NCBI RefSeq assembly: GCF_031769215.1
Contig: NW_026782625.1
Location: 1-64,000 of the forward strand
DNA from: Ylistrum balloti
Taxonomy: Eukaryota
Direction of reading: 5' to 3'
DNA length: 64,000 nucleotides
The translations under genes were made by a program, and so were the position numbers. Under the pieces are notes generated by a model. That model did not search any database, was not told the origin of the DNA, and saw nothing but the letters and a program-made list of their open reading frames with translations. Positions 10,266 to 26,689 of the stretch are shown here, in pieces. How positions within the stretch are numbered: position 1 is the stretch's first letter; each line of letters starts with the position of its first letter.

Positions 10266-10400
10266 CTTGACTGCAATTACTTCCCACCCAACCTTCCGTA
10301 CATCCAGGTATTTTACATATCCCACTCCTCACATCACAGTCAGAGTTTTCACAATGACAGGTCTGTTTACAGTCTCTTCCATATGTGTTGTTTACACACC
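10266..10400 (-). CDS. Gene B EGF exon 10 (nucleotide-identical to exon 9)
   Basis: 135 nt, 8 Cys, acag/gtatc. Confidence 0.88.
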
Positions 10401-10838
10401 CTGTAATACAATTTCAGATACAACTCGATGAAAATACTAAGTCTATTTTATCAGTGTTGTTCTGTAGTCTATTATACAGGAATTATATAATCCTAACTCG
10501 TCTGGCTTTTATTTGCATAGGTTGATATTGTCTGTATATAATCACAGATGTACTAAATATATCCCATCATATTCACTGCCGAATAAACAAAGAAAGTCTA
10601 TCAACTGCGATTGGTATCATTTTCAACTGAACATATCTACAAATTGCACAGGAACTATATTATATTCGAATCCTTCATCATCTTCATCAAACCAATTTTT
10701 TTTTTTTTTTTTTTTTTTGAAATCCTTAATTTTTAGTTCATCAGTCAGCTCCCACAATAATATGAAGATTTATTAAAAACCAACAAAGAAAATACTCATT
10801 TGACTACCAATGCGATGAAATTACGACAAAATATATTA

Positions 10839-11770
10839 TAGTGAACCTCGGATAACTCGAAATCGATGGGACCAAGTAAAATATTCGACTTATCCGTTGG
10901 TTCGACTCAACAGTGTTTTTGTCTATAGTCTGTAATCGAAACATCGTATATTTAAACTGACCCTATCTTCGCCGATCGTGTCTGATAGCAAGGTGTTAAT
11001 GAAAAGAACAAGACAACATCTATATTTTATAATATCAATTATTTTTTATTAAAACAAAAATAAATTGCAGGTTAATGACTGTAATCATCATTGTCACAAA
11101 CACGTATCTTTCACATCAAGCTTCCTCTTCTGTCCTCTTCATTCTTCCGCATTCCTCTCAAATGATCCAGTTATCTCCCCAGATGACCTGGGTTCTTCAC
11201 TAGATTGCTCATTTGAACTCATGATTGAGAGTGTGGAATGAATGACAAATCCCGAATTTTCACCCTAATTTATAGCCCCTTTCGACACTTCCACTCAAAT
11301 GTTGACATTTTCACTCAAATAAAATAACAACTCACGGGCAAAAAGTAAACATGAGATGTTTTATTTCAATGGCTGTTTGATCGCATAGTTCGTGGTAGAA
11401 TGAGATATTTACCTGTGCACCTGTATAAACAAAAGGATTAGGTGTATCGATACCCTGAAATTACATTGTGCATATAGGCCTGTTGACACCGTTACGGCTG
11501 ACCGATCACACTCGATACCGACAAGGAAAATTTACCCGAGACAACGTGGCGTCTGAATGTTCGACACAAACATGGGATTTTTTTGTCCGATTCAGAAGGA
11601 ACGGACCACAAAATATATTCGACACACCCACAGTATTCGATTCAACAGTGTTCGATTCATCCGCGTTTAATTTACTAAGATAAAGAGGAGAAAAAATCGG
11701 GACCGAACGAAACGTTCGACTCATCCGATGTATTCGACTCATGCGTGTTCGACACAAGTGAGTTTTACTG
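10839..11770. mobile_element. Tc1/mariner-type (pogo/Tigger-like) non-autonomous MITE, 932 bp
   Basis: Imperfect 23-bp TIRs TAGTGAACCTCGGATAACTCGAA / TTCGACACAAGTGAGTTTTACTG, TA flanks, repeated subterminal TTCGA(C/T) motifs, and an empty site in the paralogous cassette near 13270-13290. Confidence 0.8.
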
Positions 11771-12683
11771 TATATAAAGATACATATATATACACGAATT
11801 AGACAAGGTGTTTGGGAGGGGGAAACGTCTTTTTTAATGACCACCCCTGCGGTATTAATCTTAGCAATGCAAAATAAGTAATATGATTCCAAAAGAACAA
11901 GAATAAAAATGGAATCTATAGTCACACTCATGAGCACCAAACACGTTCAAATTCATATCACACATGGATATAGAATATTTGCCTAAGATATCAATTTGAC
12001 CACGTATAATTTCTCTCATAGTCTTCACCAACCTGCATCTCCCGAAACAGTTCTTTAATTTCAATTCGTTTTATAAAAAATATTCCAATTCGAGTGGCAT
12101 GATGATTTTAAATACTTAACATGATATTAGGTCGCCGGTATGACAAACAACGTTTGAACAACTAGATATGTGGCAATCAAGTGTTATAAGTATGTATTCC
12201 TATTCTGTTTGGAAATCTGTTATCAATGAGGAAGTTTTGTTTCCTTATCCTTAACTGGTATTATGGGATTGTAATGCTGAAGTGTGATAAACTGGTGTTC
12301 CGTTTTCGGAAGTTATGGTTAATGTGTAGGTAGTGTTACCTTTGTTACAAGGAATCATATAAGTTCTTCTCGAAGCAAGGATTGGATTGTATAAGTATAA
12401 ACAGACATAAATCAGGTTATCGCACGCTTGTTTGAGGGAACAATGACATTTTTGTATGCACATCACTGATAGTCGTCGTAGTATCAGAATCAGGAAATTT
12501 AAACTTCACTTTTGTTTTTATCTGAGAATATTACATATTTTTTCTTTATTATCACATTTACAGAATGATAAACGAAACAAGACACACCATACACTTTTTA
12601 TACTAAAAAGCTTAAAGCATGGTATACAATGATGACATATAAGCAGGAACGTGGTTTTATTGAGGTTGATTAGTAAATGATAC

Positions 12684-12818
12684 CTTGACTGCAATTACTT
12701 CCCACCCAACCTTCCGTACATCCAGGTATTTTACATATCCCACTCCTCACATCACAGTCAGAGTTTTCACAATGACAGGTCTGTTTACAGTCTCTTCCAT
12801 ATGTGTTGTTTACACACC
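12684..12818 (-). CDS. Gene B EGF exon 9 (CVNNTYGRDCKQTCHCENSDCDVRSGICKIPGCTEGWVGSNCSQ)
   Basis: 135 nt, 8 Cys, acag/gtatc. Confidence 0.88.
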
Positions 12819-13890
12819 CTGTAATACAATTTCAGATACAACTCGATGAAAATACTAAGTCTATTTTATCAGTGTTGTTCTGTAGTATTTTACACTGTAT
12901 TAATATCATCGAAACTCGTCCGGTTTTTATTTTAGTTTATTTCATGGGGTTTTATTGTCTGTATATAATCACGGATGTACTAAATGTATCTTTCCTCTCG
13001 TTCCGATTACTAATATCCAAACATATTCACTGCGGATTGAAAAAAGAAACACTATCAACTGCGATTAGTATTATTTCCAATCGAACATATCTTCACATTG
13101 CAAAGGAACTATAATATTTTCGAATCCTTTGTAATCTTCATCAAACCAACATGTTTCTAATTTAAAAAAATCCTTTATTATTAGTTTATCAGTAAGCTCT
13201 TGTCAAGCGTTAACGAAAAGCAACAAAGAAAATACCGATTTGACTACCAATGCGAGGAAATTAGGACAAAATAGATAATATAAAGATAAACATATATATA
13301 CTTGAATTGGGTGTTTGGAAGGGGAAAGCCTTTTTTGGATTACCGGACCCGCAATATTAATCTTAGTTCCGCCAAATAAGTAATACAATCCCAAAAGAAC
13401 AAAAATAACAATGGAACATTTAGTCACACTCACGAGCACCAAACATGTCAAACTTCATATTTTACATAATAATATATAATATTTGCCTATAACATCGTTT
13501 TGATCAAGTACAATTTTTCAAGGATTGGATTGTATAAGTATAAACAGACATAAGTCACGTAAACGCACGCCTGTCTGTGAAAACAATGAAAATTTTATAT
13601 GCAAGTCGTTGAAAGCGGTTCCTTACATCATTGAATAAAAACTCTTTTGAACTGTATACCACAAACAATGATATCAGTAAAACAGCTATATTTGTAAATT
13701 ACTTGCGTTATGTCTTTTCATCACTGGAAAAATAAATAAATATGTCAAAGTTATTACATTTCTCATCTGTATCGGCAATAAGATATTTGTTAGCAAATTG
13801 CTGAGACAACGGAATGAGAGAATGCATCTAAGAACACTGCAAAATTATTCTTTATTCCACCCTAATAATGGCATAATTTTAAACAAACCC

Positions 13891-24430: not shown

Positions 24431-24996
24431 AAGACCATTGATATCTCGGGCGTAAAAACACATGAATACCATCATGACTTACAACAACGTTCTTGACAAT
24501 ACCAAATATATATAATTGATCCGTAAACCACATAGAGTTATAACAATAACAGAGCTTTCAGATATGTTAACAAACAGTCCCTCTCACAGTATAGGTACTC
24601 GCTCGCTTTCCTTCAATATAGCCATTCTTTAATCAAAGTGAGTTACTCCATCGACATGGCGAACGATATAATTTTGGGAAACCTGTGATATAATGAAACC
24701 GTTCAAAATATCTGACTGGGAGATGTCTGAGTCGACAGAATGCTTTCATTTGGTATATGATTCTCTACGTATCCTGACTTCATTATACGAGTAGAGGATT
24801 CGACTCGCCATTTATGAGTAAGTGTGAGAACAGTTTGGAGACGAAATTTTCTGTTAAACCACGATACATGATGTTTTAATTTTGTAAACAATGCACGTAT
24901 GCTAATGTTATCTTCCAGGTTCCTCGAATACACCAGGCTCTTATAATTATAATGTTTAAGATTAACTCCCTTGTAAGTTATAAATGAAGAATCTAC

Positions 24997-25131
24997 CTTG
25001 GTCACAAGAATTACCCATCCAGCCAGCAGAACATCCCGGAACAAGACAAGTTCCCGTCATTTGGTGACAGTCAGGTGAGGCACAATGACAACTCTTACTA
25101 CAGTCTTGTCCAAATTTACCTCGCTCACAGG
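24997..25131 (-). CDS. Gene B EGF exon 3 (same peptide as exon 2)
   Basis: 135 nt, 8 Cys, AG/GT intact. Confidence 0.88.
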
Positions 25132-25779
25132 CTGTAAAATGATCATTGTTGATAATATATTCAAGGGATTGTTATTGATAATATGTATTTTGATGAGATT
25201 TTTTACCAAATGCCGCCATTCCTGAACGACATCTATCATGTACATGTAACTATCATTGTGTCTTTTGAAGGGGTTTTCTGTAAATAAATCTATGCTTGCT
25301 CCACATAAAACTGGACAATTAATCGAATTGAATGAGGTCATCCTCAAAAATAAATTATATAACCACAGTATAGGTACTCGCTCGCTTTCCTTCAATATAG
25401 CCATTCTTTAATCAAAGTGAGTTACTCCATCGACATGGCGAACGATATAATTTTGGGAAACCTGTGATATAATGAAACCGTTCAAAATATCTGACTGGGA
25501 GAGGTCTGAATCGACAGAATGCTTTGATTTGGTATATAATTCTCTACGTATCCTGACTTACTTCATTATACAAGTAGATGATTCGACTCGCCATTTATGA
25601 GTAAGTGTGAGAACAGTTTGGAGACGAAATTTTCTGTTAAACCACGATACATGATGTTTTAATTTTGTAAACAATGCACGTATGCTAATGTTATCTTCCA
25701 GGTTCCTCGAATACACCAGGCTCTTATAATTATAATGTTTAAGATTAACTCCCTTGTAAGTTATAAAAGAAGAATCTAC

Positions 25780-25914
25780 CTTGGTCACAAGAATTACCCA
25801 TCCAGCCAGCAGAACATCCCGGAACAAGACAAGTTCCCGTCATTTGGTGACAGTCAGGTGAGGCACAATGACAACTCTTACTACAGTCTTGTCCAAATTT
25901 ACCTCGCTCACAGG
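25780..25914 (-). CDS. Gene B EGF exon 2 (CERGKFGQDCSKSCHCASPDCHQMTGTCLVPGCSAGWMGNSCDQ)
   Basis: 135 nt, 8 Cys, AG/GT intact. Confidence 0.88.
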
Positions 25915-26554
25915 CTGTAAAATGATCATTGTTGATAATATATTCAAGGGATTGTTATTGATAATATGTATTTTGATGAGATTTTTTACCAAATGCCGCC
26001 ATTCCTGAACGACATCTATCATGTACATGTAACTATCATTGTGTCTTTTGAAGGGGTTTTCTGTAAATAAATCTATGCTTGCTCCACATAAAACTGGACA
26101 ATTAATCGAATTGAATGAGGTCATCCTCAAAAATAAATTATATAACCACAGTATAGGTACTCGCTCGCTTTCCTTCAATATAGCCATTCTTTAATCAAAG
26201 TGAGTTACATCGACATGGCGAACGATATAATTTTGGGAAACCTGTGATATAATGAAACCGTTCAAAATATCTGAGTGGGAGAGGTCTGAATCGACAGAAT
26301 GCTTTGATTTGGTATATAACTACGTATCCTGACTTACTTCATTATACAAGTAGATGATTCGACTCGCCATTTATGAGTAAGTGTGAGAACAGTTTGGAGA
26401 CGAAATTTTCTGTTAAACCACGATACATGATGTTTTAATTTTGTAAACAATGCACGTATGCTAATTTATCTTCCAGGTTCCTCGAATACACCAGGCTCTT
26501 ATAATTATAATGTTTAAGATTAACTCCCTTGTAAGTTATAAAAGAAGAATCTAC

Positions 26555-26689
26555 CTTGGTCACAAGAATTACCCATCCAGCCAGCAGAACATCTCGGAAC
26601 AAGACAAGTTCCCGTCATTTGGTTACAGTCAGATGAGGCACAGTGACAACTCTGACTACAGTCTTGTCCAAATTTACCTCGCTCACAGG
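26555..26689 (-). CDS. Gene B EGF exon 1 (CERGKFGQDCSQSCHCASSDCNQMTGTCLVPRCSAGWMGNSCDQ)
   Basis: 135 nt, phase 1-1, 8 Cys, AG/GT intact. Confidence 0.9.

Follow-up and report, generated by a model that had tools for sequence, protein, structure and literature searches.

Does a row of equally long, in-frame exons in a scallop receptor gene serve as a library from which splicing assembles many isoforms, or does it record the gain and loss of exons in the germline? The question is raised by the first 64 kb of contig NW_026782625.1 (C768) of Ylistrum balloti, the stretch of 64,000 nucleotides that we refer to as the window. It holds two tandem paralogues, both on the minus strand, namely gene B (about 40317 to 6018) and gene A (from beyond 64000 to 47800). 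Both encode type I membrane receptors, in which a signal peptide is followed by two F5/8-type-C (FTP) lectin domains with 1.5 EGF units between them, then by a stalk of 8 to 10 eight-cysteine EGF-like repeats of the Stabilin/SREC/MEGF10/Tie2 type, a single transmembrane helix and a short tail. The original prediction, made from the letters of this DNA, proposed that the stalk exons could be freely combined by splicing, as a Dscam-like or bindin-like route to diversity. The stalk diversification that is visible here is genomic: it arises via tandem amplification of exon units, with a different unit amplified in each paralogue. We consider it probable that the locus is an ordinary inherited array of class 1-1 modules, with germline change of exon copy number and serial inclusion of the exons.

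The stalk exons were located by a six-frame scan of the window for the cysteine motif, followed by inspection of the borders. The scan gave 20 matches, every one on the minus strand. Gene B contains 10 intact stalk exons between 10266 and 26689 (B1, 26555..26689; B2, 25780..25914; B3, 24997..25131; B4, 23165..23299; B5, 21261..21395; B6, 16303..16437; B7, 15638..15772; B8, 14804..14938; B9, 12684..12818; B10, 10266..10400; all on the minus strand), and gene A contains 8 between 51314 and 62090 (A1, 61956..62090; A2, 58758..58892; A3, 58271..58405; A4, 56209..56343; A5, 55716..55850; A6, 53654..53788; A7, 53164..53298; A8, 51314..51448; likewise minus). All 18 are exactly 135 nt long, have AG directly before and GT directly after them, and are of phase 1-1, starting with 2 nt and ending with 1 nt of a split codon. 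The pattern C-x8-C-x3-C-x-C-x4-C-x6-C-x4-C-x8-C (spacing 8-3-1-4-6-4-8) is likewise present in 18 of 18. On all these counts, the description of the exons in the original prediction was confirmed. Each of the 18 therefore belongs to class 1-1, with phase-1 introns on both sides and a length that is a multiple of 3. The uniform length is not due to chance; since the 18 exons are paralogous copies of one ancestral exon, they do not represent 18 independent events. As a side observation, a second reading frame is open across the whole length of B5 (21261-21395), B7 (15638-15772) and B8 (14804-14938).

It had also been claimed that no stalk exon ends in T, that no junction can create a stop and that any subset of the exons splices in frame. 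Indeed, 15 of the exons have G as their final base and the other 3 have A, the residues encoded across the junctions are A, E, G, V or K, and no stop codon was found at any of the ordered exon junctions of gene B (0/45) or gene A (0/28). The structural precondition for free combination thus holds.

The claim that the exon borders cut through the EGF-laminin module stood in one register and fell in another. With single exons as queries, Pfam EGF_laminin (PF00053) gave 12.6-15 bits, below its cut-off of 21, and aligned exon residues 14-44 to model positions 3-33 of 49, so that the next exon completes the module. On a stretch of four exons the sum reached 26.2 bits, each single stretch being under the threshold of 21. 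The better-scoring model PF24887 (EGF_STAB1-2) instead places one whole module in each exon. On single exons it gave 21.6-26.4 bits, slightly under its cut-off of 27 (residues 3-44 against model positions 4-48 of 50). Joined stalk sequence was available in the NCBI model of gene B, P0152 (XP_060081732.1, "MEGF10, partial", Ylistrum balloti), which matches the window exons at 99-100%. Its residues 415-594, in which B1-B4 are joined, gave 60.9 bits in four stretches, one per exon, the best covering residues 4-46 against model positions 4-49. Throughout, the queries were single exons or NCBI proteins as stored, the latter being the only source of joined sequence. The solved structures closest to a four-unit profile, the Tie2 EGF repeats and SCARF1, also align in exon register. 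An AlphaFold2 model of P0152:415-594, built on an alignment of 11 rows, was poor (mean predicted local distance difference test score, 56.9; predicted template modelling score, 0.29). Judged from these alignments, the cutting of the module would depend on the register of the model chosen and would be no peculiarity of genes A and B. In laminin-EGF modules, the disulfides join cysteines 1-3, 2-4, 5-6 and 7-8; applied to the stalk, this pattern would confine all four disulfides of one unit to a single exon, whichever register is taken.

One repeat per phase 1-1 exon is the generic architecture of the family and nothing special to this locus. On the related contigs C137, C945 and C1302 and on the rest of C768, we found 28 more 135-nt exons with the same motif between AG and GT. 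Five distant MEGF-like loci (on C280, C519, C383, C58 and C244) contributed 39 more one-unit phase 1-1 exons, 26 of them 135 nt long and the others 120-138 nt. Outside the genes of the window, there are thus 67 one-repeat phase 1-1 exons at nine other loci. Since every MEGF-like gene examined has the same architecture, we see no sign of a special mechanism in genes A and B, and this speaks against a dedicated cassette library. The arrangement is also shared with class 1-1 module exons in general (Patthy's rule) and with the sponge aggregation factors, whose extracellular modules are likewise flanked by phase-1 introns and can be duplicated, deleted or skipped without harm to the frame. Of the 155 introns in those sponge genes, 154 are in phase 1, and the authors named alternative splicing, helped by the symmetry of the exons, as one possible source of variation (PMC5400394). 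The sponge factors differ in having Calx-beta and Wreath domains in place of EGF-like ones, and in the scallop the module is a single exon of fixed length.

Change of exon number is recorded directly in the DNA. Exons B1-B3 belong to a unit of about 780 nt that occurs three times in tandem (24585-26920; 96-98% identity), and A2-A7 to a two-exon unit of 2.55 kb that is repeated in tandem in 2.35 copies (52950-58943; 91-97% identity). B2 and B3 do not differ at any nucleotide, and B1 departs from B2 by 5 nt and from B2/B3 by only 4 residues. The units of B9 and B10 are 84-88% identical; the exons themselves differ at none of 135 positions, and their flanks are 87-90% identical. The amplified unit varies from paralogue to paralogue, so that the DNA itself already specifies stalks of different length and composition for different paralogues or haplotypes. 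In B6 and B7, the upstream intron and the 5' part of the exon are 95% identical (15698-15976 versus 16363-16641), and the 3' exon parts and downstream introns have diverged to 62%, a pattern that, from the alignment, looks like a recombination or conversion breakpoint within the exon.

The B9-type exon is present in 2 copies in gene B, 3 on C137, 10 on C945, 1 on C1302 and 1 on the distal part of C768. It is nucleotide-identical in 14 of these 17 copies over four contigs, including C137:772501 and C768:88736, and the 200-nt flanks of the copies differ by about 5-12% or more. Such identity amid diverged flanks suggests that the exon is strongly constrained or that gene conversion is centred on it. 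The peptide of B8 is 100% identical to that of its copy on C137, and the older stalk exons retain all 8 cysteines and both splice sites, with flanks down to 60-75% identity. This retention indicates that these older exons are under selection and hence presumably included in functional mRNA.

Would the same pattern be expected if the array were partly an artefact of assembly, with over-expanded or collapsed units and haplotigs, or a set of decaying pseudogenes, so that exon counts mean little? On C945 (32574-46001), the ten copies of the B9-type exon are identical and follow an exact period of 1477 nt, which reflects either very recent amplification or over-expansion by the assembler. Identities of 96-100% between units would suit an artefact, as would the small size of C768, C945 and C1302 (52-90 kb), which resemble a locus on the 846-kb contig C137, and the partial and frame-shifted state of the sole NCBI model for gene B. 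However, the units carry substitutions of their own, as seen in B1 versus B2 and in the lower identity of the gene A units, and all exons of genes A and B are open from the signal peptide to the C-terminus and have intact splice sites. Furthermore, in independent DNA data, the word depth was 27 over the B9 unit compared with about 6-20 over the other stalk exons; as a rough guide only, this fits a multi-copy unit. We therefore regard an artefactual or pseudogenic array as very unlikely.

The explanation that we favor, an inherited array with germline copy-number change, could operate as follows. The FTP-EGF receptor genes would share an inherited architecture of class 1-1 modules, the kind used in exon shuffling, with all MEGF-like genes of this genome, and unequal crossing-over between units of exon plus intron would add or remove whole repeats. 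Since the exons are symmetric, such gain or loss leaves the reading frame intact. The intact stalk exons would then be spliced serially, with occasional in-frame skipping as a by-product. Comparable cases are the kringle IV-2 exons of LPA and the SRCR exons of DMBT1, in-phase domain exons that unequal recombination multiplies or removes together with their introns. Those genes are vertebrate, encode other domains and have documented polymorphism between individuals. The scallop array resembles their pattern, with polymorphism suggested by the differences between contigs.

Serial inclusion is in line with the proteins at hand. Homologous scallop proteins contain 4-8 consecutive units in series at a spacing of 45 aa, and the in-frame part of P0152 has B1-B4 in series. 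A search for sequencing runs brought up no RNA run; the single run found, mapped on 10441-16440, covered introns and exons alike, without exon-exon joints, and thus represents DNA from another individual or a relative and does not bear on splicing. When B8 was searched against a collection of 5.8 billion proteins for transcript-derived fragments, the candidates (24-77 aa) had no words in common with it.

Several points weigh against our interpretation. Constitutive inclusion of the stalk exons is something we infer. Pairs of isoforms annotated in related scallop genes are set apart by a single EGF cassette (52 aa between X1 and X2 in Mizuhopecten yessoensis; 31 aa between X8 and X9 of an SREC-like protein of Argopecten irradians). 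P0152 leaves out the intact exon B6, and P0154 (XP_060064890.1), the NCBI model of the C137 paralogue, joins a B1-like exon straight to a B8-like exon; if RNA sequencing introns underlie these two models, exon skipping does occur here. Moreover, C768, C945 and C137 are 82-97% identical and may be either paralogues or divergent haplotigs. Finally, judging from the domains, the receptors could act in glycan-binding recognition or in engulfment, with signaling via a tail motif similar to the immunoreceptor tyrosine-based activation motif (ITAM).

These points bear on the proposal of regulated cassette splicing, in which the stalk exons form a library that yields many isoforms per gene, up to hundreds, as somatic diversification of a recognition receptor. 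Cassette skipping is plausible at genes A and B, considering that no choice of exons would break the frame or introduce a stop. The four disulfides of each exon are presumably self-contained, as suggested by the laminin-EGF and Tie2 pattern and by the exon register, so that skipping would leave no cysteine unpaired. The one-cassette isoform pairs and the omission of intact exons by P0152 and P0154 are further points in favor of a library, as are the isoforms of Drosophila Draper, which have 15 or 5 EGF repeats (PMC2724735). However, both NCBI models are aberrant. In P0152, a cryptic AG within B5 is used, and the residues that follow (about 110, covering B7 and B8) come from a wrong frame that is open and meets no stop; P0154 ends in a decayed exon. 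The omitted exons may thus be prediction artefacts in a repeat array. In the relatives, the cassette differences fall within arrays whose repeats are identical, and there copy-number alleles or mis-assigned reads look the same. Sequence diversity is also small, with B2 identical to B3, B9 to B10, and B1 close to the first pair. Given the two identical pairs, the 2^10 isoforms proposed for gene B are too many, and at most 576 distinct products are possible. Because of the identical exons, many of these would differ only in length, not in sequence. Taken together, we find a regulated library rather unlikely. Combinatorial splicing is a possibility offered by any class 1-1 array, and the evidence points to germline exon amplification as the active process.

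The Dscam-like variant of the proposal, mutually exclusive splicing with one exon, or one per sub-cluster, in each transcript, can be judged from the same data. As in Dscam1, homologous exons of equal length stand in tandem in a gene for a cell-surface recognition molecule. In Dscam1, however, the exons are alternatives for one position and are chosen by docking/selector RNA pairing, whereas the scallop units occur in series, both in the homologues and in P0152 (B1-B4), and some are identical. The known means of exclusion also find no support. The introns between the stalk exons are 530-4823 nt long, so steric exclusion does not apply, and all borders are GT-AG, with no hint of incompatible U2/U12 pairs. 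No 12-mer in an intron of gene B has its reverse complement in at least 4 other introns, in a crude test for docking/selector signatures that counted exact matches. We give mutually exclusive splicing hardly any credence. With a generic architecture, identical exons, no such complementarity and units in series in the homologues, the suggestion of a Dscam-like or bindin-like diversification was not borne out.

Both processes could in principle act together, with germline gain and loss of exons followed by combinatorial in-frame skipping in immune cells. We consider this two-level diversification quite improbable. If it were true, each scallop would have its own large repertoire of lectin receptors that differ in their stalks, and the identical B9-type exon would reflect exon-targeted gene conversion that keeps the cassettes interchangeable. 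Combinatorial use of the stalk exons, if it occurred, would add a route to receptor diversity in invertebrates to those known from Dscam and the FREPs of snails, and the lineage concerned is one whose innate-immune gene families are strongly expanded. Under the favored explanation of an inherited, recombining array, the locus is a clean and datable example of how class 1-1 exons let a receptor ectodomain grow and shrink by unequal recombination.

Two decayed stalk exons accompany the intact ones. The first would be the 11th of gene B (13890..14024, minus strand); it has kept the acceptor AG and lost the donor GT, its first cysteine is now tyrosine, and a frameshift leads into a stop. It is also present at C137:770991-771098 and near 31069 on C945. 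P0154 takes the C137 copy as its last coding exon, and the product would lack a transmembrane segment. The decayed exon might act as a poison exon or as an alternative terminal exon, or it might be debris common to the paralogues. The second, in gene A (50691..50862, minus strand), is frameshifted and has lost cysteines.

The remaining parts of the two genes, all on the minus strand, define the family to which they belong. In gene B, exon 1 (40246..40317) encodes the signal peptide MELVNIDTSGYLIFFLLCSGPYIV... and exactly matches the N-terminus of P0152. Each FTP domain of this gene is split over two exons. The N-terminal half of the first (39211..39513, exon limits approximate) was recognized by Pfam F5_F8_type_C_2 (E 1.2e-8) and by tblastn with the Mizuhopecten homologue P0151, and the C-terminal half (36585..36824) is a 99% match to P0152 residues 97-176. 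The exon with 1.5 EGF-like units between the FTP domains (32376..32627) is 79% identical to P0151 residues 177-260 and is not of the 135-nt type. The second FTP domain follows with an N-terminal half (31154..31369; F5_F8_type_C_2, E 8e-7; 100% match to P0152 residues 256-327) and a C-terminal half of 261 nt and phase 1-1 (30306..30566; 100% match to residues 329-414). Downstream of the stalk lie the transmembrane segment NITGYALLGTFLAISICCNIGLVVVCLRQS (about 8181..8273) and the C-terminal coding segment (6018..6104), found by tblastn with P0151. In gene A, the C-terminal half of the second FTP domain (63257..63508), the transmembrane segment (49014..49109) and the C-terminal segment (47800..47886) lie within the window, and the remaining 5' part lies beyond it on C768.

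Homologues were reached by a HMMER search with an exon of the second FTP domain and then by word searches, which led to NCBI proteins of scallops. Pfam found both F5_F8_type_C and F5_F8_type_C_2 twice each in P0152:1-414 and in P0151. NCBI labels the scallop proteins MEGF10, MEGF11, draper-like or SREC-like. Like MEGF10, MEGF11, Draper, CED-1 and SREC (SCARF1), they are type I membrane proteins in which atypical EGF-like repeats with 8 Cys form long arrays. They differ from the MEGF10/Draper group in that two FTP domains replace the N-terminal EMI domain, which Pfam did not find in P0152:1-414 or P0151, and in that no NPxY motif was seen in the tail of P0151. Because the EMI domain is absent, genes A and B are not MEGF10 or Draper orthologues despite the NCBI names, and membership in the MEGF10/Draper/CED-1 orthologue group was ruled out. 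The FTP-EGF receptor subfamily was recovered mainly from molluscs (bivalves and gastropods), with weaker matches in amphioxus, a hemichordate and fish. Thus, a bivalve receptor family with lectin heads, an EGF stalk and an ITAM-like tail is mislabelled MEGF10 and poorly modelled by automatic annotation.

In both genes, the C-terminal exon (6018-6104 and 47800-47886, minus strand) ends in ...NYEGLDLSKVDNVRNIYDTIQK, which by eye reads as an ITAM-like YxxL-x11-YxxI (YEGL-x11-YDTI in gene B, the same motif in gene A). P0151 has the same ITAM-like tail. The tail of Draper carries an ITAM-like motif that binds Shark, and the spacing in the scallop motif is similar. In P0006, P0161 and P0216, proteins of Argopecten and Ylistrum, an ectodomain of FTP and EGF parts is joined to a cytoplasmic protein-tyrosine-phosphatase domain that replaces the short ITAM-like tail.

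The tandem array continues beyond gene B. A second copy of exon 1 at 390-461 marks the start of the next gene, and the region 214-8744 matches 40071-49545, in keeping with tandem paralogy of genes A and B. Downstream of the exon-1 copy lies a minisatellite (1411-2152) with a 69-nt period, 10.8 copies, 98% matches and one open frame, and a degenerate relative of it is found near 44100-44370. Within the intron between B4 and B5, on the plus strand, 21891-22289 holds an open reading frame fragment of a DDE_3 transposase (Pfam PF13358, E 5e-13).

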